A model generated the notes under the pieces. The model did no database searches. It saw only the letters and a list, made by a program, of their open reading frames with translations, and was not told the origin of the DNA. DNA of 20,473 bases from Amoeboradix gromovi X-113 (Eukaryota; Fungi; Sanchytriomycota). The stretch lies in the NCBI GenBank assembly GCA_018985225.1, contig JADGIF010000099.1:1-20473 (forward strand), read 5' to 3'. Positions 964-20,318 of this stretch are shown piece after piece; positions within the stretch are counted from its first letter, which is position 1; every line of letters starts with the position of its first letter. A program made the translations under genes and the position numbers.

Positions 964-1118
964 TAAATCGAGATGAACTTCAGCTTGACTATTTTCTTGA
1001 ATATATCATTTATCGCGAATTTGTATGCATTTTTGCATAATTTCAAAGACTTTTCCAGATTTTTCTAATACGTTAAACACTCGATATTCTTCCTTTTCGC
1101 AAATCGTAAATCAAATGT

Positions 1119-1187
1119 AAAGAAATAAGTAACAGGTACAGCATACATTCATCAACACTGATAAGCTGGTCCAAACATGGTAATTTG
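1119..1187 (+). pseudogene. tnpA: N-terminal MerR-type HTH remnant of IS607-family serine recombinase TnpA
   Basis: Manual translation gives KEISNRYSIHSSTLISWSKHGNL, which fits the IS607 TnpA N-terminal pattern KEAxxxLGVHxxTLxxWxxxGKI. It lies immediately inside the left end, where tnpA starts in IS607. Confidence 0.7.
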
Positions 1188-1405
1188 ATGCCATGCACAA
1201 TATGTGGCACTCTAAAGAAAACCAATTTGGAGAGATATTCATGTACATAGTGACATTGCGAGGTCGACATGGACCACATGGCACCAAGGAACAAATTCGA
1301 TGCCATGTACGAGGTATGGCACTTTAAAGAAAACCAATTTAGAAACATACACATGTACAAATTGTCATTTGGAAATAGATAGAGATCATATGACAGCAAG
1401 GAGTA
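1182..1405 (+). repeat. 112-bp tandem duplication of the Fanzor Zn-finger/RuvC-III segment inside copy A
   Basis: The same motifs recur exactly 112 nt apart: AATTYGATGCCATG at 1182/1294, TAAAGAAAACCAATTT at 1213/1325, CAAGGA at 1285/1397. Confidence 0.85.
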
Positions 1406-1440
1406 CAATACATCAAGTATCTGCATCCTTACTCAATGCC

Positions 1441-1570
1441 ACCTCAGGGTAGTGAAAGCGTGAGCAATCACTGTAACGGAGCATCTAGCATTGCTAGTTT
1501 CTTTGTGGAAATTCTCGATTTTCTCGGAAATCAGGACTTTTAACGAGGAGTATGCAAACTTTTATCAAAA
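1441..1570 (+). ncRNA. Putative Fanzor omegaRNA (scaffold ~1441-1550 plus guide from flank 1551-~1570)
   Basis: Right end of the element, highly conserved with copy B. Contains a GNRA-capped hairpin at 1451-1472 and a long hairpin at 1476-1506. Position matches TnpB/Fanzor omegaRNAs. The 5' end and expression are not demonstrated. Confidence 0.6.
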
Positions 1571-1764
1571 AATTGAAAAGTAGGGAAAATTTAATTGACG
1601 GTAGCAAGTAAAGTAAGTATAGCATAAACTTTTAATTATTCTGCCAATAACCTAAAAAGCTCTTGTCTTTAAATATCGCATTACCGCCTATACAGGCAGC
1701 ATTTTTCTTAATTCGGGTCAATATCCTATTTTCTAGTAAATTGTGAATTATCGGAGTTATTACA

Positions 1765-2187
1765 ATGTTTGTTCGATCTTTTCTTCGATCAAAAGTATCA
1801 TTGAGGACTTATTCATCAAGGGCATTGTTTAACTCCAAGCTTCCAGATCATTATAAATATGGGCCTGGTGGAAAGCCCGGTAAAATTCCAGATGATATGG
1901 AACAAGCGACAGGACCTGAGAGAATTGAGATGATAAGTAATTTGCAAGGTGAGGATCCATATGACATGTCAGTTACAGCATTGGAAAAGAAAGGAACGGA
2001 AAAGAATCCGATTATAGTGAAAAGTCTAGGAATGAGCGATCGTGTTGTTGGTTGTTCAGGTGTTAAAGATGATGGTCATGATATTGTTTGGATCTTCTTA
2101 GAAGGAAAAGAAATCAGAAGATGTACAGAGTGTGGAAATGCTTTTAGACTTGATGATCTTGTCGGGACCGATGACCACGGACATTAA
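1765..2187 (+). CDS. COX4: Cytochrome c oxidase subunit Vb (fungal Cox4), mitochondrial precursor
   Basis: Arg/Ser-rich presequence. Motifs IPDDMEQATGPER, GTEKNPIIV, RVVGCSG..H..W and RCTECG (Zn ligands C-H-C-C) are typical of the COX5B family. Confidence 0.95.
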   Translation: MFVRSFLRSKVSLRTYSSRALFNSKLPDHYKYGPGGKPGKIPDDMEQATGPERIEMISNLQGEDPYDMSVTALEKKGTEKNPIIVKSLGMSDRVVGCSGVKDDGHDIVWIFLEGKEIRRCTECGNAFRLDDLVGTDDHGH

Positions 2188-2580
2188 TGATTTAATAAAT
2201 ATAAAATATTTATTAAATCTTCACTGTCCAGTCTCCCCATTGGAAGCATGAATTCCTACTGTATCGATATCATATTTTGAAGGAAGAATTTTCGATTGTG
2301 GCTTTTGAATGTTGTTGTATACCTAATAAACACATCCTTATTACCACAACTAGCATCTTTCAATACTGTTGATAAGGTATGATGAACCATTTGATACTGA
2401 GTAAGACAATCTAAAAATTCCATTTTTTCTTTAGCACTATCTCCTGATCATCTCTAACGTTTGCAATAAATTAATTAAAACAGTTTTATTTTTAAATTGA
2501 ACCTTGAAAAATTGTTTGGTCATCAATGGGGACTTGGCAGTAACTACTTTATATAATGTTGTTACAAATGTGTTTACTGA

Positions 2581-2901
2581 TTAAAGACATAGCAATGAAA
2601 GTATGATAATTTTGAAGGGAACTTCGTATGTAGCCGACGACTTCTTGTAATATTTTGGATCTATATCGGTAGGTAGGTTCGCTATAACAGATTTGTTAAC
2701 GTTTCCGAAGTTGTTGCCAATTTCAGAGTGAGAAGTACTGTTAGTTACAATAAACCCTGTACTAAGTCCCTCATTGCATTTTTTATAGCAATCACTCCAT
2801 AGTGTCCTCTCCAAGGAGTTGCAGTTAACTACACAGGATTGAACTGCCACAGCATTTTCAAAATTGGCAGATTCAGCAACTAGAACTGCAATGGTAAGCA
2901 T
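2581..2901 (-). CDS. Small secreted, probably GPI-anchored Cys-containing protein, 106 aa
   Basis: Hydrophobic N-terminus, two CxxxC pairs, and a C-terminal SSA followed by a hydrophobic tail (FKIIILSLLCL). Confidence 0.65.
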   Translation of the reverse strand: MLTIAVLVAESANFENAVAVQSCVVNCNSLERTLWSDCYKKCNEGLSTGFIVTNSTSHSEIGNNFGNVNKSVIANLPTDIDPKYYKKSSATYEVPFKIIILSLLCL

Positions 2902-3012
2902 TAATTAATTTAGCCTATTTCATTTTTGACAAACAAGTAATTGGCAGCTAACCAATCAGGATTTCAAAATCGAATCACAAATTATATACAAAACTAGATA
3001 CATCTCTTTAGT

Positions 3013-3094
3013 GACGGTTTGGCACAGTGGTCTAATGCGGTTGCCTAGAAAGCAATTTCCTCCGGGAGCACAGGTTCGAATCCTGTAACCGTCG
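3013..3094 (+). tRNA. tRNA-Ser (anticodon AGA)
   Basis: Acceptor GACGGTT/AACCGTC with discriminator G. Anticodon arm GTTGC-CTAGAAA-GCAAT. Long variable arm TCCT-CC-GGGA. T arm ACAGG-TTCGAAT-CCTGT. No intron. Confidence 0.96.
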
Positions 3095-3335
3095 TTTACA
3101 AAGTTATTCCCCGTATTTTTTATTCTTGTGATAAGTTATTTATTGACACTTGACCAATATTTTATAGTTAATTTCTCACTTTTAAGATACAAATTATGAT
3201 CTGGTTTAATAGTGAGGTCCACAAGGTGCAAAATTCCGAGTTGACTGCGGTTTTTGGATTTTACTACAGCAAAAGCCTAATCATATGTGGGTTTGAACAT
3301 TGGTTGATTAATTCCCTTTTTCTTCGGTTTATCAT

Positions 3336-4520
3336 ATGAAACATTCACTACTAAGGTCTTTGTTATTATTATTTTTAATCTTTACATTATCAATTTTTTG
3401 GAAAAGCGTATATTCTTTCAATGCGGTACTACCATTGAACTACGTATTTAAGTCAAATTTAAAAAGCCATCAGCTTTTGGGCTCCAAAGTGATTAATTCC
3501 AATGGCTATTATAACCCCAGTGTTTTACCACTTCCTAGTGGATTAAATCTTGTACTATTTGGGTTTAAAGTAGGCAGAGTTAGGCAAAAGATTAATGGCT
3601 ACGCCTACAATATTCCGCATTACTGTTTAACTAACACAACTGAGTGTTCTCCGAAGCCCATTAAATTGACTATAGACATCGAAAAATACAAAATACTGGA
3701 CATTAAAGCGGAGTTGAGGGATTTTGAGGATACTCGATGCTTTTATCATCCTAATGGTGATGTAATACTTGTCATATCCTGTCCATCAGCATTGAAAAAT
3801 CAGTTGCGAACCTCTTGCATTGTCAGTGCACAGCAAGTCATTCCCGAGTTAAAGCATATAGTTAACGTTAAACCGGTTTATCCTGCAATGATTTCAGTCG
3901 GGAGTGTTTTATCAGTTTCTGAGTGGCCTAAAAACCAAATTCCAATATTTTTAAATAGCGATTCTATCTATTTGTACGGTTTGAATCCTGATTTAATTTA
4001 CCGATTAAATGATAATGGTAAAACTACAATTTTGTCTAAGTTGTATAATGACTGCACCTCCCAAATGTTATCCGAGTATCCAAGTTTTAGTTCAGCGCAT
4101 CTGGGTAGTAACATGCTGCGACTAGTTTTATGTAAACAAGGTGGGTGTACTCCAAATACGCGCAACACAGTTTTAATTCAAATCGTGCATGTAGTGTATC
4201 TTACCAAGCATACAGTGCGAAATCAGTATCCGTACTACTATAGACTATTTCAGGCAAGAAGTATTGAATGGCCGTACAAACCTGTTTTTTACAGCAATCC
4301 TTTTTTTGTTGACGACTTCGACCCGAATATCTTAATCTATTCTGAATCCATAAATTACAAAATCCCATTTAAGGGAGATCTAACACAAAGAGATATTGGA
4401 TATCTAGATACTGAAGTTGTTCTTGGCTGTGGAATAGACACATGGGAGATTCACATCCCTCTGCTTGTTGATTTTACATTTCGTAAATTTTACGAAACGC
4501 GAAATATTTGCAAAATCTAA
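3336..4520 (+). CDS. Type II membrane protein with a probable five-bladed beta-propeller glycosyltransferase/glycosidase-like domain (GT91 beta-mannosyltransferase / GH130-like)
   Basis: N-terminal anchor. Motifs YYNPSVLP, FEDTRCF and WPKNQIPIF resemble the NPS / EDPR / KNWxPF motif series of this clan. Family call is by motif recall only. Confidence 0.55.
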   Translation: MKHSLLRSLLLLFLIFTLSIFWKSVYSFNAVLPLNYVFKSNLKSHQLLGSKVINSNGYYNPSVLPLPSGLNLVLFGFKVGRVRQKINGYAYNIPHYCLTNTTECSPKPIKLTIDIEKYKILDIKAELRDFEDTRCFYHPNGDVILVISCPSALKNQLRTSCIVSAQQVIPELKHIVNVKPVYPAMISVGSVLSVSEWPKNQIPIFLNSDSIYLYGLNPDLIYRLNDNGKTTILSKLYNDCTSQMLSEYPSFSSAHLGSNMLRLVLCKQGGCTPNTRNTVLIQIVHVVYLTKHTVRNQYPYYYRLFQARSIEWPYKPVFYSNPFFVDDFDPNILIYSESINYKIPFKGDLTQRDIGYLDTEVVLGCGIDTWEIHIPLLVDFTFRKFYETRNICKI

Positions 4521-4558
4521 AGTCTGAAATCCTTGGACATAGAGACCAGAGTTGTGTG

Positions 4559-4593
4559 ATTGGTCCCAAATATCTAGCCAATATGGTGATTGG
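4559..4593. promoter_or_regulatory. Cluster of three CCAAT/ATTGG boxes upstream of the 4665 gene
   Basis: ATTGG 4559-4563, CCAAT 4578-4582 and ATTGG 4589-4593, about 70-105 nt before the ATG. A similar ATTGG/CCAAT pair lies at ~2940-2956 upstream of the 2901 gene. Confidence 0.35.
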
Positions 4594-4664
4594 TTGTTGT
4601 CGGCTGAACCCAGACATTGTCCTATTTTCGATACTTAAATAGTAGTTGATGCTTTCAAGAAGAA

Positions 4665-5012
4665 ATGCTGTTAGCTATTCTTGCATCGGCAATTATACTA
4701 CCTACCAGAGCGATTCTTGTAAAAAGACAAGATGTTCCACCTGATATCCAAATACCGCCCCAAATTTCAGTGAAAGCGGATCCAACAGAACATGTAGACA
4801 AAGCTGCCAAGAGAAAGAGTGCTGCGCCGCCCAAACATGAAGAAGATCCGAATGACTTGGTAAACGAAGACGGTAATTTAACTATCGATGATTATAGGCA
4901 TTATGAGGATATAGTGGACGGCTCCGTTGATGGATCATTTAAACTAACCAGCCTGGAAAAAAGAGGACACAAGGCTACTTCCGATAATGGCGAAGTTAAT
5001 GATTTTGACTAA
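4665..5012 (+). CDS. Small secreted acidic protein with dibasic (KR) processing sites, 115 aa
   Basis: Signal-like MLLAILASA, KR sites at LVKR, AAKR and LEKR, Asp/Glu-rich low-complexity sequence. Confidence 0.7.
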   Translation: MLLAILASAIILPTRAILVKRQDVPPDIQIPPQISVKADPTEHVDKAAKRKSAAPPKHEEDPNDLVNEDGNLTIDDYRHYEDIVDGSVDGSFKLTSLEKRGHKATSDNGEVNDFD

Positions 5013-5168
5013 AATTAGCTAAATTGGCATACTCTTCTATATACCCTTCTAAAAGATGACGTCTAACGTGCTCAGTAAATTTATTTTATTAAATCTTGCT
5101 TTATAAGCAGCCAATATCTTAGATTTCTAACCAAGGTTTGCATGTCAGTACATATGCCGTATGCACAT

Positions 5169-5711
5169 CACCTCTTTAAAATTCTTAACTTATGTGAGAA
5201 TATAAAGAAATTTCAGAAAAACTGCCTGCGCCAGTCGAACCATTACAACTGCTGCTCAAGTTTTAACTCTCCTTGAGTGGAATTGAATAGGTTACTTGCA
5301 CCTGGATTACATATTTTTTATCACCGTTGGTCTTTATCTGCTTCAAAATAATTGCTTGCAGACATGCGTCTCTCTTAGTAGCTTTTCTTCAGAGTTTTAT
5401 ACTTTGTACAAGTTTGACTTGTAAACATCTCATTACATTGCACAATCCATTTCAATTATCTTTGACTAAAATTTTATTTGCAAACCATCATTGGAATGCA
5501 GTAGAGTGCATCCTGTATCGCTTGATGATTTCCTTAGACTCAAATTATCATAATGTGGTAATTTAGAGGCAATTTTCAGAGATGAAAAGAGCGAATGTCG
5601 AATTTCTATGGAATTAGAAACCCATAGAAAGGAGTATTAGATTGGATAGGTGTTATGATAATCACTCTCCCAATTCTGGGAATCAATGTGATAGTAATTT
5701 ATCATGTACTG
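5169..5711 (-). mobile_element. Old, degenerate IS607/Fanzor2-derived element, copy C (left boundary approximate)
   Basis: Minus strand 5446 downward translates IVQCNEMFTSQTCTKYKTLKK (copy B: IIECNESFTRQTCTRCGTLKK). Ends TTTTAAAGAGGTG versus TTTTAACGAGGAG in copies A and B. 5583-5632 aligns without gaps to the left-end region of copy B (about 34/50 nt). Confidence 0.75.
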
Positions 5712-5780
5712 GATGTAATCCAGTAAACTTGTTGCTCAGAGCTTTTCAAATTTCTGTTTCTTTCCTTGAAAATTACATAG

Positions 5781-6263
5781 GAGACATCAAATATAAAAAC
5801 TGGACTAACTTTCTGCAACAACTTTGAACATTATTTCAGCTTTATTATTTTATGGATTTAAGAGGCGAGTGGACATTCAGCTAGTTGCGGAGTTGACGAG
5901 TATAAAAGGAAAATAAATATTCTGTACAGCTATTCTCTTACTCTTTCATCCAATCTTTATTTCAAATAAAATATCACTACTACTCTGTAAAAATTAGAAT
6001 AGATAAGAGTAATGATGTTAGTATAACATTACAAAATGGTTCTAGAAAAGAGTACCGTCTAAGAAAATGCACCTTTTGCTTAGATGCTCAAAGACCTCAT
6101 ATATTTGAACGAGATGCAGGGTCTTCTAGTTTTATTTTGAAGAGGGGATTGAAACTAATGAAAGAAGATTGGTATAATAGAAGATCTTTTATTAATGATA
6201 GCATTTCCTCCTTATGGAGCACCTTTAAAAACGAGTTAGTCTAGTTTTTATATTTGGTGTCCC
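5781..6263. mobile_element. 483-bp non-autonomous TIR DNA transposon (MITE), Sola2-like
   Basis: 30-bp TIRs at 5781-5810 and 6234-6263 (27/30 match), GAG/GGG termini, 4-bp TSD ATAG (5777-5780 and 6264-6267). A second copy occupies 1-84. Superfamily is inferred only from termini and TSD. Confidence 0.85.
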
Positions 6264-6853
6264 ATAGGTCTAGGTCATTCAAAATTCTCTGCATTTCATT
6301 TTTATTGGCTTTGGATATTATCCCAGGATGGTATAACATGAACGAGACTTCTGTATATGATGCATCTCTTCTCTGCAGTGACGGATATAACACTTTATAT
6401 TCATGTGAAAGTAAAGCTAAATACGATTTCCTTAAGAGTAGCGCAAAATTTCCCAACAATTTAAAAGATCAGTTAAAAATTCAATGTGAGCCATGCCAAG
6501 AGGAAAATATTCAGTTTACAGCCAAATGTTCCAGTGATGTAAGCAATGGAAACCATGAAGCATTTTTACTGGAGTTTCAGTGCCATAAAGAAAAAGATGA
6601 ATATTGCTTTGCATCATTATACAATAACAACAACCCAAGCTATATTGATGCCACTTTCAATTGCGATGATCCTTGCCATACGTACTTAGCGAGATATCTT
6701 CAAAGTCAGGGCTTAACTGAGCCGGTAAATTATACCAGATCTGCAGTGTATCAGTTCAGATGGGACAAAGATACAATTGATGATTGTTTATCAGTATCAA
6801 GTGGCAGTATGATTCCTCGTCAATTTCTTATGATGCTAATATTAATGTTATAA
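6254..6853 (+). CDS. Cys-rich, probably GPI-anchored surface protein; 5' end uncertain
   Basis: Open frame with about 11 Cys and a C-terminal SSG plus hydrophobic tail, followed by AATAAA at 6863. The TTG start at 6254 lies inside the MITE TIR. The first ATG (6338) is downstream of the signal-like FKILCISFLLA. Confidence 0.6.
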   Translation: MVSHRSRSFKILCISFLLALDIIPGWYNMNETSVYDASLLCSDGYNTLYSCESKAKYDFLKSSAKFPNNLKDQLKIQCEPCQEENIQFTAKCSSDVSNGNHEAFLLEFQCHKEKDEYCFASLYNNNNPSYIDATFNCDDPCHTYLARYLQSQGLTEPVNYTRSAVYQFRWDKDTIDDCLSVSSGSMIPRQFLMMLILML

Positions 6854-7191
6854 GTAGCGTGAAATAAATGTGGTTTCTATAAATATTAAGTCTTATCACT
6901 CAGCAGTTCAGAACAAATTACATGCTCTACCCAGACAATCGTTTCGCCCATGTTAAAGGTGAAGTTCTCTAATTAATCAAAGATAACATTTTTCAAATAT
7001 AGAAAGCTATGGTTTTTCATTTCGGATAATGATAATAGCTTTAACTCTAATTATCAACATCCGAGATTTTTCTATCATAAAGTAAATGTAAATAACACAA
7101 AAACTGCACGACTGATTAAAAATAACGTTATTGGAGACCTTTAATTAGTTGTCAGCAGAAAAAATACAAGAAATATCCAAAAATCTTTTAT

Positions 7192-7735
7192 TTACATTAA
7201 TGAGCACCTGGTCTGCTCCGTTCTATCCATGAGATCCAGCAGTGATTGAAATATTACATCTTAATTAATCAGTTATACCTATATTTTTGTTAAGCTTTGC
7301 ACTACTCTCTATTGCTATCCCATTCCATCCAGTACTCACTTGTTTGGCTTCCTCGTAGCTAACCTGCCTATTTTGCAAATCGCATTTGTTTCCCACCAAT
7401 ACTATCGGTATAGTATCAAGTCCTGTTAACTGTAGTATCTTATCTCTAATCACCTTCAGCATGGTAAATGATTGTTTTGATGTTATGCTGTATACTAATA
7501 TCACTCCATGTACATTTGCAAACTGAGTACTTATTAGTGTGAATTCGTCAATTCCTGCTGTATCGTGGATCTCCAAATTATATTTTTTGTTTTTATAGCC
7601 ATACAGCTTTGTATATGTAGCGTTTATTGTGGGTTGATAATCATCATTAAAGACTCCTTCTACGAATTGCATAGTCAATGAGCTCTTTCCTACAGAGGGC
7701 GCCCCAACTACTACAATTTTTCTTCCGAGTGACAT
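7192..7735 (-). CDS. RHEB: Rheb-like Ras-family GTPase, 174 aa, two exons (7735-7279, 7259-7192)
   Basis: RKIVVVGAPSVGKSSLTMQFVEG, YQPTI, DTAG, LVGNKCDL and ESSAK motifs. After removing the 19-nt intron the frame ends ...TRCSLM*, a CaaX box as in Rheb. Confidence 0.9.
7260..7278 (-). other. 19-nt spliceosomal intron in Rheb
   Basis: GTATAACTGATTAATTAAG. Contains the in-frame stop, and its removal restores helix 5 and the CaaX box. Confidence 0.88.
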
Positions 7736-7869
7736 GTGAAAATGTCTTGGAAGGGGTATCAACCTGACTCCTAGAACAATGTGTAGCACAATTGGGAGAT
7801 AAGTTGGAGCTCTTTATATGCTCGATCAAGACTACTGCCAGTTAAATAGATTGTTAATAATATATTTAC

Positions 7870-10800
7870 TTATGCATAAAACTTTTTGTTTATCAAATGA
7901 ATCAACAAATTAATATTACACTTCGCCATATCAAATAGCATCACCACGGTTTGTCCTTCAAACTGGCTCTGTAATAAATCGTCCAATCTTACCTGCTCCT
8001 TTTCTTGCACGACTACTATGCCTTTTATTGGACTGTAAGTGACCGATACATCAAATATACCTGCCTCATCACTACCAATCGCAATATCGATCTTATCATA
8101 CTGTTTTACACTCACTTCTGGATGATCTATACTTATCAAGACACCCTTTTCCTGCAACTGTTTAGCTGTGTACTTGTACGATCCAAATTGAGGCAACTTA
8201 CCATTCTCTTTGACCACTCTCTTCTGGTGGTAGTACTGTTTATTAAACATTCCTGGTTGTTTCTTGATCTTTTTATTCTGCATTCCGTGCAAGCAGCTGT
8301 CTATATAAGTCTTATAAGATTCTTGCTGCAATTGCAAATACTGCAGTTTGCTCTTTAAATGATCAATGGTTTCAGCAATCTTTTGGTATTCCAATTTTCT
8401 GTTATTTCTCTTGATATTTCGTTCCACTATGTCTTTGCTAAATTAGTATGAAGTACCCAATGGATGCTATAATTTCCTGATATCCATTCTTTTTACTGGT
8501 CTTACCTCTGGCTTCTAGTAAGTTTAAGTTTAATAGAATCAATTTCTGAATATCTTGCAAAGTACTGTGAGATATGCTAGCAACACTAGCAGAAACAGCG
8601 TTTGTAGACACAGTGTCTCTTCCTACTGTATTTACATTCGTCAGTTTACTATTTAACACAGCACTATCTTTGTCTAGCTTGTTCTGACTACCGATACTGT
8701 GATGCTGCTCTTTCAAAAACGACTCTTCGCTCTCTTTAGTCGGCTGTATATTCAGTAATTCGATAAGATTTCTGCTTTGACAATGCTGCATCACGATTAA
8801 TATTAATCTCTTGGTCTCTGTAAACAGTTGTTTTAGTTCAATCTCCACTGATTCATCATTATGTGGCATCAGATTACTCAACAATGCAAAGGACTGTTCT
8901 TTGCTCTTTTTGCTCAATACATCATCAATTGTTATGTTTTCAAGCGAGTCCAAGTCATTCAATAACGTGTAGATGTAATCATCTTTTTGCAAATGAATTT
9001 TATAATCCAGCAATAACTTGTGCAATCCTATGATTTCAGTAGGACTGATAAACAAACTAGGCTTCTTAACGAGTATAAAGTCACTATAGTGATCAATTTG
9101 AAAGTATTCTTGCAGTTCCACAACCTGACACGTCTGGCTGAGGAACGCTTGAAATTTGATGCTATTAGATGCAATATACGCACTAGCGCTGTTGGAACTG
9201 ACATTAGAACTATTAACACTTGAATCGCTGCTTCCTATACTGATTAGGTTGAGGAGTTTACTAATTTCTGATAAATTCTTACGTTGCTGGGTGGTTAATG
9301 AAACATCGCTGCTAATAACGTCAAACGCTTCTGGTGCGACGATAGCAGGGTTGATGTATCTAAAGAATATCAAATTACCTATAATGCGATTAATGTTCTC
9401 AATAGACTCGTTTGGGAACTTAGCCATCAACGAAGATTTGACTTTGTTAGCTATACACCTAATACCATACGGCATGCGGTGAACACTTGCAAATATAGAA
9501 CTCAAAAATAAAGAAGTCAATTCCTGAGTGTGGCGTTGCATGTTTTCATATTGCACTTTTATAACCGGATCTTGTAAGGCCTCATCTTTAGTGATATCCA
9601 TCTTTTTGCTACTCTTTTGACCTGTCTCCGTTTCTTCTTTAATTATCATCTTTTTGTATAAACTAATTGGATCATTATCCAGCTCCACATCGCTCTGGAA
9701 GACTTGCATGATAGGATCTTTAAGTATGGAGCTTAAAAATTGTCTATCCTTTGCGCCACGTATATAGTTTACGACCAATCGAACAAACTGAGGATTGCTT
9801 TTAATAAAATCACTCAATTCTGTAGTCTCGTTGATTTCCTTGTAGATAATCAAATTAAATAAACTCAGAAGCAAATACTCTTCACGAGGATGCTGCGCAT
9901 ACCCATAGACAGTGAGAATAGATTGCTCCACAAACTTCTTGATTGTTTCACTAGTCATTTGGCGCATTTCCAAAACTATATTACTAAGATAAAATGGATT
10001 AGTTTGAAGCATGTAAAGCAAATTCTGGTAAACCTCTTGTTTATGCCTACTGTCCTTGTCCATCAATTTAAATACCGAGTACATGTTGTTATTAGTGTCA
10101 ATAACTTGTTGATTTGCAGAAGTGCTAGTTAGCTGTATGTCCTCCAAGCTCATTCTATTCTTTACAATTAAAGCTACTTTTAAATCCAAGTCGTTTATCA
10201 TGGTCTCCATTGTAGAGATGTCACGAATATATTTCACCACAGATTGACGCAGATCGCTAGCTTCTAGCTCTTGCTGATAATCTAAATTGGTATTACCATG
10301 GTTAAACATTTCAATAGATTTGTATGTGGGTTTATTAAGCAGTTGGCGGTACAAATGTCGAGTATGGTGTGACTTCCACAAAGACTGGATTTTAACAATC
10401 TCATTAGATTTCAGCTTGTAATAGTTGGAATGACCAATATAGTTACGGCGACATTGAAATGACTTGATTCTGGCCTGAAATAGTATATAAACGGGCAAGA
10501 ATTGGATCAAATGCTGTTGAATTAACTTAAAACGCAAACGGACGACATAATGACGAAACAAAGATTGAAACTGAATTATAAAAGGTTGCTGAGCGCGATA
10601 GTGGTTCATTTGCTGTTTGAACTGATTGCGAACCAGTGCACCACGGAAGAAACGATGAAAATCCACAGAATTATCATCTGTGAAGTGGTTGATTAAATGC
10701 TGATTTGGATCCAAGTTCATTTCTTTAGCAACTGCAGCACCAGCATTGTTAAAATCTGGAAGATTTAGCTCTTCAATCTGTTTTTGAGTAGTTTCTAACT

Positions 10801-11338
10801 CTTCATTTGTGAACTGCAAATGACCACGAAGATCTTTAATTGCTGGAGCCAGTTTCTTGGCACTTAATAAGTGAGCCAACGCATGAATATTGTAGATGAC
10901 TTTGGGAATATTCTTTTTGTCATACAGATCAGTTAATTCAAAAACAAAAGCATCCGGAAGATCAATTGTTTTGCAAAATATGAAAAAGTAGTTGATGTTA
11001 TCAGAATGTCTGAATTGCAGTTTAGCATCTTCACCAAAAATACGTTTAACAATATCGGGTTTGAACTTTTTGGCCAATTTTGCTAAAACAACACCATTAC
11101 GGAGATGCTCATCCAACTCTACTACAGGAGGCAATTGCTGGTCAGAACAGGCTTCTATCCACTGTTTGGCTTCACCAATGTGACACAAGTACTCATAGGC
11201 TTTAATTTGTTTACGGTTCAAATCCATCCAATTTTTTTCATTCTGGGCTACGGCTACATCTACGTGCTCTTCCAAAACTAAATCGCGCTGTAAACGTAAG
11301 CGACCTTGAACAACTTCATCCATTTCAGAGGTGGACAT
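7870..11338 (-). CDS. IQG1: IQGAP (CH domain, IQ motifs, RasGAP-related domain, RasGAP_C), 1149 aa, two exons (11338-8457, 8437-7870)
   Basis: AYEYLCHIGEAKQWIE, LRNGVVLAKL, LQFRHSDNIN, FELTDLYDKKNIPKVIY, MPYGIR and FFRYINPAIVAPE motifs, plus C-terminal KYTAKQLQEKGVL and NINLLIHLINKKF. The two ORFs join in frame across a 19-nt intron. Confidence 0.95.
8438..8456 (-). other. 19-nt spliceosomal intron in IQGAP
   Basis: GTACTTCATACTAATTTAG with a CTAAT branch-like motif. Splicing gives YQEIIASIGKDIVERNIKRNNRKLE, colinear with the conserved IQGAP YQxxxNxIAxDI motif. Confidence 0.9.
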
Positions 11339-11966
11339 GTTAGGTGTTTCAAATTAATACGTCGTCTAGGAAAACAAGAAGAGCTTGTTTGTAAAGCCTG
11401 GCGAGTTGATTAAAAGATGCTCGCTAGCTAAAATAGAAGAAAAGGCGTCTGCAATGAGCGCATATTGTAACCCAAAATTAATTTTATTAACTAGCTTTTG
11501 GAACCTGCAATAATCGATTTTAATTACACAAACTTTTCATAGCAATAAGATGAGCTCTATAAATACGATAGTTTTTAAAAGAATTTCTTAAATAGTATAG
11601 TCTCTTCTCCTTATCTATGCCAAATGTCATCAAATCACCACTGCCAAGTGTCTCAATATTTATGACATCAATAGCATATTAAAAAATACGCTTTTATACA
11701 GGAGCTATCCAATTCTTCTCGGGCTCAGCACATAGGCTCCGGTAGCATCTAAAAGACGTCAAAGAGTTGTTTGGTATGCTCTCATTTTTCTCAAGAGAGC
11801 ATCATGTGTGTAATAGTCTCATGCAATATAAGCAAGAAGACAATACTGGGCAAGCCAGTACTTTGCCTAAGGAGTTCCAAGATCCTGGAACTGTAGAAGT
11901 CAATATAAATGGCCATTTAACATATTTCAATTTTATTTGTCACCTAAAATTCGGATGGCTCGAAAA

Positions 11967-12038
11967 TAGCGAGGGCAGGTTTTGATCCTGCGACTTTGAG
12001 GTTATGAGCCTCACGAACTTCCACTGTTCCACCTCGCT
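11967..12038 (-). tRNA. Initiator tRNA-Met (anticodon CAT)
   Basis: Minus strand: acceptor AGCGAGG/CCTCGCT with discriminator A (A1:U72). Anticodon arm TGAGG-CTCATAA-CCTCA. T loop ATCAAAA (A54/A60, eukaryotic initiator type). Followed by a TTTT Pol III terminator. Confidence 0.93.
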
Positions 12039-13553
12039 TACTTTGGATCGTTAACTAAATTTTACTAATTCTTATCAGTAACAGACCTGCGCTTTTTTTG
12101 CATGCTGAGAAAACTATTGAGTTTTGGTTTCAATAGTTTTGGTATCCTTCTTCTCCAGGTCATGCTCCACGAAACGTCATTGTCATTCTTGTCATTTGTA
12201 GATACTTATGAATGCTATCATGAACAAAAGAAACATTGCTTTTTTGTCTCGACTTTTTTTTAAAGTTGTAAAACTAGCGTAAACTACATTAAACGACTAT
12301 TGACTTAATTTTACTTAGCTTCTCACATCGTGTTATCTTGAAGGAATTAATTTTGAAGATTTACTAATCATAGTTCAAGTTTTAATAATTCAGACTGATG
12401 CAAACTCCCAAAACTTATTCATTTCGGTAAAAAACTTAGAATACCCAAGTGATAACTCAGGCAGATAAATAACTTTTTATCCGTAAAAGTATTATTTAAA
12501 ATGATCAAGATTTCACAAAAATGTTCGAAAACAGAACCAGAAATCTAACTAGTAGTGCATCACTTCTACTGCTCTGTAGAATATGAAGTAAACCTTATAA
12601 TAAGGCACATTCAGAAATGTGTTTGAATAGTTCCATTTTAATTTACCTTAAAAGTCAGCAACATAAAAATAACTCGCCGTATATCAGTCAATTAAGGTTT
12701 ATTAGTGGTACTAGTTTGCATGTTTCTCATTAATTTTGTCAAACTCATCTTTTCTCAGTGAATGATTGAACAATTCACCGTCAATCTTGTAGCTACTGAC
12801 AAGTCCAAGGCATGTATCGACCACTTCCCATTCTTTGTCATCAAACTCGACTTTCTGTTGTCTGCAAAAGGTGTTCACCATTTCAAATGTGTAAGTACCG
12901 AGCAAGTGAGGAGCTTGAGTTTCTGTATACCTTGTTGATCATCAACTCCTTAAATCTATCCAAAGTGATCTTGGCATAGTCAGAAAAGGCAGTGATCAGA
13001 TGGCTGTCAGTTCTGCTGCCTGGTTCTCGGCAACTTTTCGCTCTCTTGAAGACTCTTCCAGAGTAAGACGCACAGGGTAGAAATTGCACTTGCCAGAAAA
13101 ACAAATCTGCAAATATGTTTGCCTCGATCATTTCATCCATTCTTTTTTAACATCGTCATGACTCTTTTATAGATCATCGCATTTTCTTTCGACTACATAA
13201 TGGCACTTGCAGATCATTATGATCATTTTGTAAGAAATCAAGTTTTTGTCTTACATCTTTAAGCCCAAATGCGTTTCTGAATTTGTGCACAAATTATGTG
13301 TGAATATCTAGCATCACAGTATCCAAAGTTGACTTTTTGTCAATTTCTTTCAACAAAGAGTCGCAGTCAGAAGGGATAGTGGAGTCCAGATTCTTAATAA
13401 GCCTAGCAACAGACAGCTCTATTTGGCGCTCCATTTTCATTCCTGATTTTATGTTCAAATAATCCACAACCATCTCTTTAAATTCTTGTAAACAAGAGGG
13501 CTTTAATGCAAGACTCTTTCTGAGGTACATTACTACTTGGCCATCATCTGGGT

Positions 13554-13680
13554 GTTGGAAGCCATGTACTTGGCTCCTCGTTAAAAGTCCTGATTTCCGA
13601 GAAAATCGAGAATTTCCACAGAGAAACTAATACTAGTTTCTCCGTTACAGTGATCGCTCACGCTTTCACTACCCTGAGGC
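13554..13680 (-). ncRNA. Putative Fanzor omegaRNA (scaffold ~13680-13574 plus guide from flank 13573-~13554)
   Basis: GNRA hairpin AGUGA-AA-GC-GUGA-GC-GA-UCACU (13670-13649) and 12-bp hairpin ACGGAGAAACUA-GUAU-UAGUUUCUCUGU (13645-13618), at the right end of the element. Confidence 0.62.
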
Positions 13681-14130
13681 GGGATTGAATAAGGATGCAT
13701 ATACTTGATGTACATGTTCCTTGCTGCCATATTGTCTCTATCTATTTCCAAATGACAATTTGTACATGTGTATGTTTCTAAATTGGTTTTCTTTAGAGTA
13801 CCACACCTTGTACATGTCTGACGAGTAAATGATTCATTACATTCGATTATCGTCTTTCCTCTTTGTTTTCACTTGAACTTCAAGCGTTCCTTGAATGCGT
13901 AATGGGACATGGTCGCCATACTTCTAGCTACCTTGCTCGACAAACTACTTATCATCTGGCTCGTATTGAACGATGGCAAGTAAATAAGATCGTACGTCTT
14001 TGTATACTGTACCTGAAAAGGAAGAATATCGAGTGTTTAAGCTATTAGAAAAATCTGGAAAAGTCTTGAAATGATACAAAAATATATACAAATTCGCGAT
14101 AAATGATTTGTTCAAGAAAATAGTCAAGCT
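13574..14130 (-). mobile_element. Non-autonomous IS607/Fanzor2-derived element, copy B
   Basis: Shares both ends with copy A. AG core at 14130-14129 and 13575-13574. Carries a ~140-codon Fanzor C-terminal remnant. Seamless removal restores the host ORF. Confidence 0.92.
13581..14003 (-). pseudogene. tnpB: C-terminal remnant of a Fanzor2 / IS607-type TnpB RNA-guided nuclease
   Basis: Manual translation: TKTYDLIYLPSFNTSQMISSLSSKVARSMATMSHYAFKERLKFK*KQRGKTIIECNESFTRQTCTRCGTLKKTNLETYTCTNCHLEIDRDNMAARNMYIK... It has a CxxC..CxxC Zn finger, RuvC-III DRD..AARN, Pro at the canonical RuvC-II Glu position and the alternative Glu in NESFT. One in-frame TGA at 13871-13869. No RuvC-I or N-terminal half. 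Confidence 0.9.
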
Positions 14131-14521
14131 GTTTCCTCTAGGGGTAGCTTTAGAAGATGTGCTTGATCGTTTCATTAAAGTGGTGTGGTCATAAGCTAAT
14201 ATAACTATGATAGCCCAAGATAATATATAGATGCCTATTATCCGCCCAAATTGTTGACTAAGCTGTAATCAATATATTTTTACAGATCAATTGCAATTAA
14301 TTATATAGTTTTTTTTTTGTATCTCAATGATCAGCAGGGATACTGTAAAGAAAAAGGTAGCGCAAATGATATGATTTCTCAGGTTCCTTATCTTCATGCG
14401 TTGAGATCTTGAGCACCGGTACACAAAATAGACTACTATTCTGGTTTTTATTGAAAGTAAAATCTTTTTAGAAGAGAACTAATCTTCAATCTAAATATTG
14501 TGGCTTGTCTCGTAAAGATAA

Positions 14522-16738
14522 ATGTTGGTTTTTTTAACCAGTCTGTTAGCCTTCACGTCTTCAGGCTCCAAAACATTACGCGTTTGCGTAAACTATCTAG
14601 AGAAGCCGAATTCGCAATCATTGCTTGAACTGGATACATTCGTAAATCAAGTTTATTTAAAAAATTTATCCTTCCCGGATACAAAAATCGCAATAATTCC
14701 TTTTGTTCAAAATTCTACGGGAAGCGTGAGAAATAAAATGGTTTTACTTGGTAAACTGTTTACTGATACGGATTGTGATGCAGTTATAGGTTCTGAAGAT
14801 CCTGCTAGTAGTGACACTGTGTTTATTAGTCATTATCTGCGTCAGAGCTCCAAACCGATATGCAGTTTAACATCAATAGATTTGGATAAGACTACAAGAT
14901 TGTTAATGAACAATTTGATATCTGTTGTACCATCTAGTAACTTGTTGACTGATAAAATAGCCAGTGTTATTGCGCAGTGGGGCGATTTTCAGATTATTTT
15001 AGATCCTTATTATGTTAGTTTGTTATCTGGTCTAGTTCCAGAAACTATCAATCAAATTGTGATTGATAGGAGTTCGATAAATTTCAAAAATGAGATTCAC
15101 AGTGCTGTATCAACTATAGCTGCCTCCAAGTCCAACTTGGTTCTTTATCTAGGAACAGAAGACGTGTTTTCTGCTATTTATGATGAAATTTTATTAACAT
15201 CCCCCTCTTTGATGGGCACAATTGAATGGGTGCTACTTTCAATGACTCCGATTGAGCTAAATTCGTATTGGAGGAATGTCTACATATTATATCCATTGAA
15301 TTCTGTTGATTCAGGTCGTCTTACTTGTCTAAAATCATATATTTCATTTTATGAGTATGTTGAACCAATCTTGGTGAATTCGAATTTCAATTCAGTCAAC
15401 ATTTCAAACATTAACAAGGTGAGATTTTCAGATTCTAGCAAATTCAATTCAATTGGAGATTTGGAGCGTGCTTGGCAGCTACTGAATACAGAAGATATCG
15501 CAACAATATCGGAAATAGAGATTAGAGACTTAAGATTAGAGAGGGGCACTACAATGTTCAACACGTATAAGCCCCAGTACATTGCTTTACTTTTTTTTTC
15601 CTTTTTTTTTGTGATTTTTACTGTGGTCGTGAGTGTCGTATTGCTGAGAAAAATAAGAGTTAAAAGAAGCGGAATTCTGGACATGGCTACATTGTTTGGC
15701 ATTGTCATGGGTAATTTGTATGTATTTGCATCTATTCCGAAGCCATCTGATTCCAACTGTCAGAGATCCATCTGGTACTTACCAATTGGATTGAGTATTG
15801 TATTGTCTACCATGATTACACGATCATATAGACTATACCGAATATTCGGAGGAGCAAAATTGCATTCTCAGAAATTGAATGACTCAAATTTGTTACTATC
15901 TGTGATAGGGATGGTATCAGTAAATGTTATTATTCTGCTTGTTTGGACGATTGCAGATCCAATGAAGCCGACTATAAATTATCAATATCTACAGTTGAGA
16001 TGTGATTCAGCATACAGTGGAGTATTTACAGGAATACTAGTGTTTTACAACGGTGTGCTGTTGATTGCAGCAGGATTGTTAGCTAATGGCACTCGCAAAA
16101 TTGTCAGTGAATATACAGAATCAACCCAGCTGGCATGGTCGGTGTACAACGTAGCATTATGGTCATTAATAAGTTTACCTATTCAGTTTTCTAATGGACT
16201 CGATCCATTATTGAGGCAAATGTTTAACTGCGTCATTGTTATGATAGCCATTAATACATTCACCGTTTTGCTTTATGGAAAAACATTGATAAAGACCAAA
16301 AATGAGCTCAATACAAGCCGCCCGAGCTCCACAGCAAGTGCCACCTCAACATTCCAGAAAATTGGGGTAGCAAACCTCGCAAACCAAGTGACTGCCAATA
16401 ACGATTCGAAATTATTCATTCATTTGGCGGATGTATGCGAGCCTGGGGTAGTTAACATGTACAGAAGATATTTGCTGATAATGAGCATCGAGGAGAAGTA
16501 CATAGATATATTTGAATTAATGAATGGGCAAGTGAATTTCAGTGGCAGAACTTTCAAACTGGATCTTTTGGAAAAGTTCAAAATTGAGGAAATGAAGAAT
16601 GGCGGAACTCATCTAACTATGGACCACATCCATTTGTATATATTATTTAATGGCGAAGAGTTGAACGCAAACTTTAAACAAACAATCAGACCTTTTGTAC
16701 AGATGAAGCAGAATGCGAACATGCAAGCTAAAATGTGA
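14522..16738 (+). CDS. Class C-like (GABA-B/7tm_3) GPCR with a periplasmic-binding-protein-like ectodomain, 738 aa
   Basis: Signal peptide, ectodomain motif CDAVIG, seven hydrophobic segments, and 7tm_3-like motifs C...WYLPIGLSIVLSTMITRSYRLYRIF and TRKI..EYTESTQLAWSVYN. Confidence 0.85.
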   Translation: MLVFLTSLLAFTSSGSKTLRVCVNYLEKPNSQSLLELDTFVNQVYLKNLSFPDTKIAIIPFVQNSTGSVRNKMVLLGKLFTDTDCDAVIGSEDPASSDTVFISHYLRQSSKPICSLTSIDLDKTTRLLMNNLISVVPSSNLLTDKIASVIAQWGDFQIILDPYYVSLLSGLVPETINQIVIDRSSINFKNEIHSAVSTIAASKSNLVLYLGTEDVFSAIYDEILLTSPSLMGTIEWVLLSMTPIELNSYWRNVYILYPLNSVDSGRLTCLKSYISFYEYVEPILVNSNFNSVNISNINKVRFSDSSKFNSIGDLERAWQLLNTEDIATISEIEIRDLRLERGTTMFNTYKPQYIALLFFSFFFVIFTVVVSVVLLRKIRVKRSGILDMATLFGIVMGNLYVFASIPKPSDSNCQRSIWYLPIGLSIVLSTMITRSYRLYRIFGGAKLHSQKLNDSNLLLSVIGMVSVNVIILLVWTIADPMKPTINYQYLQLRCDSAYSGVFTGILVFYNGVLLIAAGLLANGTRKIVSEYTESTQLAWSVYNVALWSLISLPIQFSNGLDPLLRQMFNCVIVMIAINTFTVLLYGKTLIKTKNELNTSRPSSTASATSTFQKIGVANLANQVTANNDSKLFIHLADVCEPGVVNMYRRYLLIMSIEEKYIDIFELMNGQVNFSGRTFKLDLLEKFKIEEMKNGGTHLTMDHIHLYILFNGEELNANFKQTIRPFVQMKQNANMQAKM

Positions 16739-17267
16739 ATAAATGATTAGCAGTTTAATACCTGTCATTTTAGTTTTTCAAAGGAGCCTAGGATAGATCT
16801 GGTAAAACTAACAAACATCTTAATTGTATAACTGATCAGCTAGAAAGCAAAATATTCTACCAACTGATGATTTAGACGACAATTACTTTTTTCAATTCAT
16901 TCTCTTCTTTTAAAACACTGGAGTAACAAGCAACAATGCTTGCAACGCTAGATTCTTGTTCTAGATAGTGCAATGACTTTCTGCTGTAACAGAACCGCCA
17001 CCAAAATACTAAACCACTCTTTATCAAGCTATCTGGTCTTCCCATATCTTGGGCTTTTCCATTACCATCGTATTCACAATCGTATCCGTTATTCCTGATA
17101 ACACAAAAACTCTATGCATAATTTGCACCGTTATCACGCTCCTGGGTCACATGGTTGTTTCACTTATCACTTTACTGTCTGATAAAACTAGCACCTATTT
17201 GGGGTAGCATTTACTGTATATTCTTCGCATTTTGCCATCCCCTTTTTCTCCCAGACTATCCTCCTTG

Positions 17268-20200
17268 ATGCTACTAGTAAATCTTGTTATTTCTTCTGTT
17301 AAACTGTTTCCCAGTCATTTTGAAATTCATGGCAAGCCAACCCTTTTGCGGAGCGGTTCTTTGCAATGGTACAGAATACCGAAAACAGAATGGAGAGATC
17401 GACTGTATAAGTTCTCGAATATATTCAATATGCTTGAAATGTACGTTAGTTGGCAGCATATTGAGCCTGAGCCAAATGTATTTAAAACTCAAGATTTAAT
17501 CGAGTTCCTGGATCTGGTTAAAGAGCACAACATCTATGTGTATTTCAGACCTGGACCGTTTATATCTAACGAAGAAAACAGTGGAGGAATTCCCGCATGG
17601 GTGATTGCGAAGAGTAACAAGATAATTAACCCGCATTTCAGAGATGGATACTATGCCCTTAGGACAAACGATTTCGATTATCTAGAAATAGTGGAAAGAT
17701 ACTTCAATGTTATAAATCGTATTATTAAGCCGTACTTAGTAACAAACGGGGGTTTTATTGTTCTATACCAGATTGAAAATGAGTACGACCACTTTGAGCA
17801 TTTATTTGAGTTGGAGAAGTCAACTAAATACGAAGGTGAACAAGAGCGACTCTCTGGCTCTACCCTCGATACTCTTGATATGTTCAACAAATTACGCTCT
17901 ATGGTTGAAAAGCATATAGATATCCCGATCAATACTTGTCCAGGTTCCTTGGAATTGAATGGGATGGGAAATGCAAGTAGGATTTTGCCTCTTCCTAATT
18001 ACTACAAAAGCGCCAACTACATAGAGTATTCTGGAATGAAATACAAAAACAATCAGCAAAAACTGATAAATTATTTAAATTTTCCAAGTGGTATATCTGA
18101 GACGTTTAGAAGTCCTTCAACCATTTCTAGATTTGTTATAAGCGGTATGGACATGGTCAACAGCTTTAATGCTTTTGGATTCTTCCAGCCTGGGCGTAAA
18201 AATTCATTATTTGCACACTTCAAAGGCGTAGTGGATGAAACTCAAATATGGAAAATACTTAAAGTTTTATTTCCTCTTCAAGACATAAGAGACTATAGAA
18301 CCTTTTTTTTCCGATTTCCTATTGGTTTGTTTCCTTCTGTCACTGATTTTAATGGCCCTGTGAGTCCAAGTGGTCAGATAAGGTTGTCATATTCTGGTTT
18401 TAGACGGTTGCATTTATTTTACAATGCTTTTGAGCATATACTAGCACCAGCTAACAAGTGTCAACGCAGCACCACTGGAAAGGTGCAAGATAAAATACTA
18501 TCTCATAGCAACAACGTAATTGTGAAAAACCCTCAAATCGGAACCCCTTCTAAGGATACTCGTCGAAACGTTGTTTACTGGTTACCAATTACCAGCAATA
18601 ACCAGGATGGTGCAATTATCGGCCTTGTTTCTCATCTATCGTCTATAACAGTTGAGCCCTACTCAATTACAGCATTTAATATATCATTTCCTAAATATCC
18701 TTTTATAATTCCAAAAAACGAACACATTACAATTAACTCACCACTCAATCAGGTCAACTCTAATAGTGATGATTTCTACTTAATGCATATCCCTGTAAAC
18801 ATCCCCATTTCGGAAGATTTTACCATAAAATACTCCACTGCAGAAATATTGACATTCACAAACGATAAATGGAGTAGCACACGTTACAGTAGACAGAGTC
18901 TATTAATGCTATATGGTGTAGTTGACAGTGTGGCGGAAATCGAATTTTCTGTTCAAGGCGATGTACAGTTTTACTCCTCATTCGGGTATAAATTCAAAAA
19001 ACACGAATCGGGTCTTTTTACATCCTTTAAAATCCAGTCATCGCCTTTTACTTTGCACTTAATCGCAAGTAATCACATTCTCACGATTATTGTCATGGAT
19101 AGATATCTAAGCGGTAGAACATACATCGCGGAGAACGGTATTCTAATGGGATGTGATTTATACAACCCCCTGGCCAATACGATGTCATTCATTACTGATT
19201 CAGCCGATTTCTACACTTATGGAATCTCTTCATTGAACAGCAGATTTGAAGAAGAGTACGTGAATCAACCTAATATTAGTTCAGTAGATGGATCTGCTGG
19301 CTTAAAAGCCTGGCGTGTTGATCACGATATAAATTATGTCAAACCGATTGTTATCAAAGCAGCTTTTCAAACTATTGACACCACAAATACTGATTCGACG
19401 TTTATAAAACTACCAAGACTACTAGAGAGTGAATTGCTTAATATGACAGAGGGGTACATAACCTATAAAAGCGAATTTGTCCTGGACAAAGTAAGCAGCA
19501 GAAACAAGTTGTACATTGAACATGCAAGCGATTTTGTATCTGTATTTATAAACAACAAATATTTAACTTCTCTAGTTCCATTAGGATCCAGGATAAACAG
19601 TGATGATGGTCATTTTAGATTCAGATTTAAAATACCATCTGAAACACTAGTAGTCGGTACAAATACGGTGATTTTAAAATGCGATGTTTGGGGCCGCGGT
19701 AGCTTTATATGCCCAAAAGGTAAGGTGTCATATGTACCGATATTCAATTACCAGGTTCCTATTGGATTTAGTATAGAAATACCGCAGTTAGGGAACGATG
19801 CAAATAAGGGCATTTATGGACGCACTACGTTCAACGACAAAGAACTGAAATGGGGATACAGTATAGGTTTAACTGGAGAGAAAGAAGGATACTACAAAAA
19901 GCAACACGGCAGAACTAAAATAGAGATACCCCACAAGGTTAAGGGTGGTGATATAGAATTCATAAACTTTAACGTTAGGCTGCCAAAATCAATGCACAAA
20001 ATTCCTTTTAGTCTGAAATTGAAGGGGAAAGATTTAAAAGCAGATATTTATATGAACGATGAGATTATAGGGAGATGGATCAGCGACGAGGGTTGGCTAC
20101 AAAAAAGTAGGGAAAACATAGATAGAAATGCTTTGAGCTTGATGAACATGGATCATTTTCCAATTCCAAGTGGATACGAGGAGATTCACATTAGTCTACT

Positions 20201-20318
20201 ATTGGATAGCAAAGGAGATGGGGTTTTAGAGCACGTGGAAGTCGGGATATCAGAAGAAATGTTAGATAAAGATGCGAAGGTCCACGGGCAATACGAAAGA
20301 GTGTATAACTTAGAATAA
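17268..20318 (+). CDS. Secreted GH35 beta-galactosidase-like protein, ~1016 aa
   Basis: SGSLQWYRIP..EWRDRL, YVSWQHIEPEP, FRPGPFISNE..GGIPAW and GGFIVLYQIENEY (acid/base Glu) motifs, with probable C-terminal beta-sandwich domains. First ATG is at 17268; the track's TTG start at 17232 is unlikely in a eukaryote. Confidence 0.92.
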   Translation: MLLVNLVISSVKLFPSHFEIHGKPTLLRSGSLQWYRIPKTEWRDRLYKFSNIFNMLEMYVSWQHIEPEPNVFKTQDLIEFLDLVKEHNIYVYFRPGPFISNEENSGGIPAWVIAKSNKIINPHFRDGYYALRTNDFDYLEIVERYFNVINRIIKPYLVTNGGFIVLYQIENEYDHFEHLFELEKSTKYEGEQERLSGSTLDTLDMFNKLRSMVEKHIDIPINTCPGSLELNGMGNASRILPLPNYYKSANYIEYSGMKYKNNQQKLINYLNFPSGISETFRSPSTISRFVISGMDMVNSFNAFGFFQPGRKNSLFAHFKGVVDETQIWKILKVLFPLQDIRDYRTFFFRFPIGLFPSVTDFNGPVSPSGQIRLSYSGFRRLHLFYNAFEHILAPANKCQRSTTGKVQDKILSHSNNVIVKNPQIGTPSKDTRRNVVYWLPITSNNQDGAIIGLVSHLSSITVEPYSITAFNISFPKYPFIIPKNEHITINSPLNQVNSNSDDFYLMHIPVNIPISEDFTIKYSTAEILTFTNDKWSSTRYSRQSLLMLYGVVDSVAEIEFSVQGDVQFYSSFGYKFKKHESGLFTSFKIQSSPFTLHLIASNHILTIIVMDRYLSGRTYIAENGILMGCDLYNPLANTMSFITDSADFYTYGISSLNSRFEEEYVNQPNISSVDGSAGLKAWRVDHDINYVKPIVIKAAFQTIDTTNTDSTFIKLPRLLESELLNMTEGYITYKSEFVLDKVSSRNKLYIEHASDFVSVFINNKYLTSLVPLGSRINSDDGHFRFRFKIPSETLVVGTNTVILKCDVWGRGSFICPKGKVSYVPIFNYQVPIGFSIEIPQLGNDANKGIYGRTTFNDKELKWGYSIGLTGEKEGYYKKQHGRTKIEIPHKVKGGDIEFINFNVRLPKSMHKIPFSLKLKGKDLKADIYMNDEIIGRWISDEGWLQKSRENIDRNALSLMNMDHFPIPSGYEEIHISLLLDSKGDGVLEHVEVGISEEMLDKDAKVHGQYERVYNLE

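Follow-up and report, generated by a model that had tools for sequence, protein, structure and literature searches.

The window analysed here, a stretch of 20,473 nt from the fungus Amoeboradix gromovi X-113 (Sanchytriomycota; assembly GCA_018985225.1, contig JADGIF010000099.1, positions 1 to 20,473), contains three related segments of about 550 bp, referred to as copies A, B and C, and raises the question of what kind of element they are and what they do. An earlier note, made from the sequence alone, had taken them for nuclease-less derivatives of an IS607 transposon carrying a Fanzor2 nuclease, each with its own guide, and had suggested that they could act as a dispersed library of guide RNAs loaded in trans onto a Fanzor encoded elsewhere. 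Judged by their sequence, the segments (minis) are decaying, non-autonomous deletion derivatives, or ghosts, of an IS607EU transposon, which combines a serine recombinase with Fanzor2. What is new here is the synonymous-biased, finely shuffled variation among mini copies that share one deletion junction.

A genome-wide family of minis

A search with a 25-mer of the family right end, allowing up to 3 mismatches, found 534 right ends in 10.5 Mb (genome size 10.55 Mb), against 0 for the control. This is a density of about one right end per 20 kb and, if most of them belong to full minis, roughly 3% of the genome; the three copies in 13 kb reported at first were far too low a figure for the genome as a whole. 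The usual mini is ~593 nt long and consists of a left end, a stub of the recombinase gene tnpA, a deletion junction, the final ~140 Fanzor codons and a right end overlapping the Fanzor stop. Several classes of deletion junction occur, and copy A belongs to one other than the common form. The minis lack RuvC-I and so are unable to cleave. Their surroundings are ordinary eukaryotic genes, so bacterial contamination is ruled out as their source. Across the genome there are 150+ matches to PF07282 and 12 resolvase matches, and many mini remnants are annotated in EukProt (P0123-P0155) as host proteins of 100-165 aa, inflating the predicted proteome.

The left junctions of the family read CAG|CT(T/C)GA, with the C present in 39 of 41, and the right ends finish in GAGGAG, beyond which the flanks are unrelated. 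The dinucleotide common to both junctions is AG (CAG at the left, GAG at the right). The family has neither terminal inverted repeats (TIRs) nor target-site duplications (TSDs), and short direct motifs lie in its ends. The assembly is a short-read, single-cell, two-round one, and the variation described here and below was examined in 36-50 of the 500+ copies, picked by similarity. In all 50 of the 50 copies sampled the right-end flank was different. The closest pair among 47 copies was 93.8% alike, a value that may be biased by the poor assembly of young identical copies. In bacterial IS607 the target-adjacent motif (TAM) is the insertion motif, and it is by the base at -3 that an empty site differs from the end of the element itself (10.1101/2023.11.20.567912). 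CAG at the empty site versus GAG at the element end fits this rule, from which a CAG TAM is predicted.

Within the window, copies A (981-1550, forward strand) and C (13574-14131, reverse strand) are aligned by blastn with 92% identity over a 118-nt left end and 91% over the final 248 nt. Copy B is matched by plain blastn in one 110-nt piece only (68%). By the family profile, its Fanzor tail together with the right end maps to 5449-5170 (E 6e-24) and, with nhmmer, the inner part of its left end plus the tnpA stub to 5629-5497 (E 7.5e-5). All three homologous segments are thus upheld, A and C by blastn and B by the profile, except that the outer ~70 nt of the left end of B went undetected by the profile and the limit of 5711 once given for this copy is unsupported. 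No close relative of B was found elsewhere in the genome, and by its sequence B is an older, much-diverged relic of the family. The tnpA stubs proposed for A and B also hold: that of A matched the N terminus of the genome's IS607 TnpA, and that of B matched the stub of A, each better than 2000 of 2000 shuffles. Only ~15 nt of the stub are left in C, and A carries a 112-nt internal tandem duplication of the zinc-finger part. Copy C breaks a host open reading frame (ORF), single-copy in the genome, that becomes continuous when C is removed without duplication; this restored frame fits an AG core and is compatible with either a host or an element origin of the cytosine at -3.

IS607/Fanzor2 identity and the search for a master

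The related elements C542 and C46 each encode a PF00239 TnpA overlapping the Fanzor gene, of which the minis hold just the stub, and the genome's TnpA matches IS607-family serine recombinases. Long cognate copies, and the protein P0003 encoded by C542, show the DPG motif of RuvC-I, a catalytic E beside a C4 zinc finger, and an RD motif. The best PDB match both of the cognate Fanzor piece and of P0003 is the mimivirus Fanzor2 9b0l, and no recognisable Fanzor1 entry is among the PDB matches listed for the two. The peptide of copy C, which had been put forward for comparison with TnpB/Fanzor domain models, matches PF07282 as the zinc-finger tail. These sequence features identify the family as IS607EU/Fanzor2, as had been proposed. 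Three of the four top relatives inspected sit among giant-virus marker genes; the accompanying protein tree was a quick build that held no Fanzor1 references and in which one stop in the piece from L074 was entered as X. A pattern search of viral and metagenome contigs yielded no confirmed relatives. In the giant-virus-like contigs L080, L082 and L083, similarity downstream of the Fanzor2 gene runs ~100 nt past the likely right end, as if locus and guide were fixed together.

Fanzors of at least three families occur in the genome. The DPG of RuvC-I is present in the longer cognate copies C385, C565, C977 and C11, and C46 and C477 are sister copies. The search for an intact tnpA-Fanzor master in this genome gave no such cognate copy: those read are broken or lie at contig ends, and for the others no long open frame appears in the match tables. 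The earlier proposal of non-autonomous derivatives and past autonomous masters is nevertheless supported; the masters would since have decayed or are absent from the assembly. A collapsed master could have been lost during assembly or decontamination. A single long open Fanzor was found, P0003 (L061:1473-3491 (-), corresponding to G000:C542), a 671-aa protein with D, E and D motifs that is ~44% identical to the cognate protein and 52% identical over 98 aa to the Fanzor2 remnant of copy C. The tnpA of C542 has a premature TAG in its winged helix, and its right end is its own, single-copy and unrelated to that of the minis; on these two grounds C542 was rejected as their master. The C542 Fanzor2 may be a recent insertion or a domestication. 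A third, divergent IS607-Fanzor family was seen in L063, L067, L070 and L072, with the right end TTTAACGTAGGC and a candidate CTAC/GTAG pseudoknot.

Mosaic, synonymous-biased variation

Variants were compared among 36 copies that have one common deletion junction and are unable to encode a nuclease. In the Fanzor frame, the ratio of synonymous to nonsynonymous changes was 34/23 for shared variants and 39/150 for private ones (p 1e-7); by allele count it was 22/7 for alleles in 6 or more copies and 27/92 for singletons. Variants in raw-read contigs were likewise mostly synonymous (17/28), and synonymous variants occur 6-50 nt from the common deletion junction. Such variants must have originated in coding masters. 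The variants are also shuffled: r2 is at background beyond ~30-50 nt, and all four gametes, each at least twice, were present in 526 of 547 distant pairs (96%), against a mean of 4% and a maximum of 15% under a clonal null. Within 20 nt the same was true of 24 of 48 pairs. Multi-base blocks assort independently, and all four combinations of a 28-nt deletion with the junction type were present. Minis and coding masters thus apparently formed one recombining pool, as far as the sequences tell.

It is improbable that the minis are a plain fossil family resembling miniature inverted-repeat transposable elements (MITEs), amplified clonally by TnpA alone, and that the mosaic reflects assembly chimeras of master-derived subfamilies together with recurrent synonymous changes. 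The amplified single-cell sample, the short-read assembly, contig names with coverage <1 and the frequent occurrence of blocks with two haplotypes at ~50:50 all favour such chimeras, which can account for the long-range part of the mosaicism. They fail for pairs less than a k-mer apart: joins at k ≥21 are unable to produce four-gamete pairs at distances of 9-19 nt. The synonymous variants close to the junction, the four combinations of deletion and junction type, and the synonymous excess in the raw-read contigs also speak against it. A TIR-bearing MITE used as a control for mosaicism gave only 14 short copies, among them one linked subgroup, and was too weak a basis for a decision.

The predicted omegaRNA right end and the question of trans guides

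The folding of the right end stands out in copy C (z -3.7); those of A (z -0.9) and B (z -1.7) are not outstanding alone. Among 16 mostly diverged copies there were 28 two-sided changes, compared with 15 in shuffles (0/500), but RNAalifold retained only one helix. A hairpin loop CCTC is pairable with the GAGG at -6 to -3, where IS607 and Fanzor2 RNAs have been described as forming a pseudoknot; both this pairing and CTAC/GTAG in the same register of another family were chosen by eye among chance 4-mers. In keeping with the earlier description, the right end is omegaRNA-like in these models, with modest covariation and a candidate pseudoknot. Rfam matched two tRNAs only. Pairing is kept by 10 of 18 shared scaffold variants and by 19 of 91 private ones (p 0.006), and the structure therefore appears to have been selected during the spread of the family. 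Private substitutions are depleted neither in the scaffold (obs/exp 1.18) nor in the stems, and all modelled pairs are intact in just 8 of 50 copies, giving no indication that selection acted once copies had inserted. The minis are most likely fossils that drift neutrally today.

These results bear on the proposed library of trans guides, for which a close precedent exists. Saito et al. 2023 (PMC10432273) described ~550-nt ghost loci in Spizellomyces punctatus, 134 in number beside 19 intact genes, whose omegaRNAs were functional with SpuFz1 and were proposed to form a guide repertoire. Ghost loci and the trans-guide idea are therefore already published for the Fanzor1 of this fungus, and the idea is not new here; the same paper has Fz2 "found broadly in fungi", at odds with the earlier note, in which fungal Fanzors are mostly Fanzor1. 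Like the minis, the Spu-1 ghosts of S. punctatus are ~550-nt and nuclease-less, with both ends, an omegaRNA region and differing flanks, but they are of Fanzor1 type, with 30-nt inverted repeats and intact genes, whereas the Amoeboradix family is IS607/Fanzor2, has no inverted repeats and comprises 500+ copies with no intact cognate found.

In Amoeboradix a live library would need an intact cognate Fanzor2, unassembled or discarded as "bacterial", or else the C542 protein, still loading the right-end RNAs of the minis. The S. punctatus precedent, the intact modelled structure of copy C, a pseudoknot kept in 31 of 50 copies, the open P0003 frame with its D, E, D motifs and the long cognate copies that reach contig ends could all be read in this way. 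With the scaffold decaying at the background rate, few copies keeping every pair, an unrelated C542 right end beside a protein of limited identity to the cognate one, no high-depth master extension standing out in the raw-read contigs, and no non-self CAG plus guide target within the fetched loci, which cover a small fraction of the genome, we regard a library operating today as quite improbable, and by sequence the functioning library of the earlier note is unsupported.

Proposed history of the family

It seems reasonably probable that the minis are ghosts of IS607EU that were moved by the TnpA of their masters, maintained by Fanzor2-driven restoration, altered by copying between elements, and left to neutral drift. 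In such a history the TnpA of full-length masters would have excised and reinserted minis by recombination across the AG core, as bacterial IS607 does with GG. The cognate Fanzor2, loaded with the right-end RNA of each copy, would have targeted an empty site through its CAG and the adjoining flank and spared the element's own end with its GAG, and its cutting would have driven restoration of the element through gene conversion; a self/non-self rule at -3 and TnpB-driven retention are known for IS607 (10.1101/2023.11.20.567912; PMC13565253). While many coding masters and the minis coexisted, template switching or ectopic conversion may have carried synonymous variants from the masters into minis and mixed them on a fine scale. 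Later the masters would have decayed, or are absent from the assembly, and the assembled minis would drift neutrally.

A bolder form, which we hold only tentatively and think rather unlikely, is that an AG-core IS607 transposed hundreds of times in the nuclear genome, that Fanzor2 homing repair with template switching pooled minis and masters, and that the minis gave trans guides, possibly still through an unassembled master. It is very improbable that the synonymous bias arose because the minis encode a selected truncated Fanzor of ~125-140 aa, possibly through a 30-nt GT-AG intron whose removal would bring the tnpA ATG into frame: an open frame of 140+ codons in 13 of 36 copies and a GT...AG segment downstream of the tnpA ATG are set against stop codons each common to 5-7 copies, neutral singletons, and host introns that, in the two visible cases, are 19 nt long.

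Several points weigh against the history of TnpA movement and Fanzor2 restoration preferred here. No empty allele was seen in raw-read contigs, no circle or abutted-end junction was found in the assembly or raw-read contigs, and the fetched loci yielded no empty-site paralogue that could prove the C to be the host's. The variation comes from a similarity-chosen minority of copies (36-50 of 500+), long-range mosaicism may be part artefact of the short-read assembly, and a collapsed master or young identical copies may be missing from it. The link from shuffling to Fanzor cutting is inference alone, and loss of mismatch repair as the cause of mosaicism is ruled out by five MutS homologues with long open frames.

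Comparison with known IS607 systems

The family resembles IS607EU/Fanzor2 elements such as that of mimivirus ApmFz2 (Bao and Jurka PMC3627910; Yoon 10.1101/2023.08.09.552727) in its serine recombinase tnpA overlapping the Fanzor2 ORF, the DPG of RuvC-I, the E directly before the zinc finger, a predicted omegaRNA overlapping the 3' coding end and the lack of TIR and TSD; it differs in its AG core and predicted CAG TAM, instead of GG and GGG, and in its massive nuclear amplification. With bacterial IS607 and TnpB (IS607, ISXfa1, CboIStron; PMC6188088, 10.1101/2023.11.20.567912) it shares a dinucleotide core for the presumed recombination, short direct end repeats, a predicted TAM that is the insertion motif with a -3 base unlike the element end, and a candidate pseudoknot beside the would-be guide, but its host is eukaryotic and its copies are mostly non-autonomous. 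No fine-scale shuffling among copies was found in the literature searched. The family is set apart from known systems by how far IS607 has been amplified in a nuclear genome, by its AG core, and by variation that is mosaic and biased towards synonymous changes.

Gilbert and Cordaux found 80 IS607-like sequences in 13 eukaryotes, without evidence of transposition (PMC3673617). The present family offers strong sequence evidence for extensive transposition by an IS607 serine recombinase in a cellular eukaryote, beyond that 2013 survey. The predicted non-GG core and CAG TAM are directly testable, and the one open Fanzor2 gene in the genome (P0003) can be assayed. If the fine shuffling is true, it would be a genomic footprint of copying between Fanzor elements and would bear on the roles of Fanzors in their hosts.

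Features of the window

Table 1. Coordinates of the three copies and other features in the 20,473-nt window.
Feature	Position	Strand	Evidence
A left junction CAG, predicted TAM; AG = predicted crossover core	981..983	+	base at -3 is C in 39/41 left junctions (background ~20%)
A left end, short direct GA(C/T)T(A/T)TT motifs	984..1098	+	blastn, junction alignment
A tnpA stub: part of the winged helix at the N terminus of an IS607 serine recombinase	1110..1181	+	match to G000:C542 TnpA N terminus, 0/2000 shuffles as good
A duplicated, decayed zinc-finger segment of Fanzor2	1190..1296	+	family profile
A frameshifted remnant of the Fanzor2 C terminus with zinc finger and RuvC-III; ends within right end	1302..1543	+	blastn, family profile
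A predicted omegaRNA scaffold, AG at end; loop CCTC 1442-1445 pairable with GAGG 1545-1548	1431..1550	+	model
A flank, would-be guide	1551..1566	+	inferred from TnpB/Fanzor architecture
tRNA gene	3013-3094	+	Rfam
B Fanzor tail and right end, ~63% identity to family; pseudoknot and many pairs broken	5169..5449	-	family profile
B inner left end and tnpA stub, old diverged relative	5497..5629	-	nhmmer E 7.5e-5; stub vs A 0/2000 shuffles
19-nt GT-AG introns, IQGAP-like and Ras-family genes	8438-8456; 7260-7278	-	
tRNA gene	11967-12038	-	Rfam
Decayed host ORF split by C	13294..14175	-	frame continuity with element removed
C flank, would-be guide	13558..13573	-	inferred
C predicted omegaRNA scaffold; modelled pairs intact except common 3-nt loop deletion	13574..13690	-	z -3.7
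C remnant of the Fanzor2 C terminus without RuvC-I; has the RuvC-II E close to the zinc finger and the RuvC-III D, with one private stop	13581..14003	-	PF07282
C left end, left junction CAG at 14131-14129	14014..14131	-	blastn, junction alignment

A separate MITE-like repeat of ~495 nt with TIRs of ~36 nt lies at 5775-6269 and 1-82, and at least 13 further pieces of it occur in the fetched loci, often adjoining Fanzor minis. The remainder of the window includes a class C G protein-coupled receptor-like protein (7tm_3) at 14522-16738 and a GH35 beta-galactosidase at 17232-20318.

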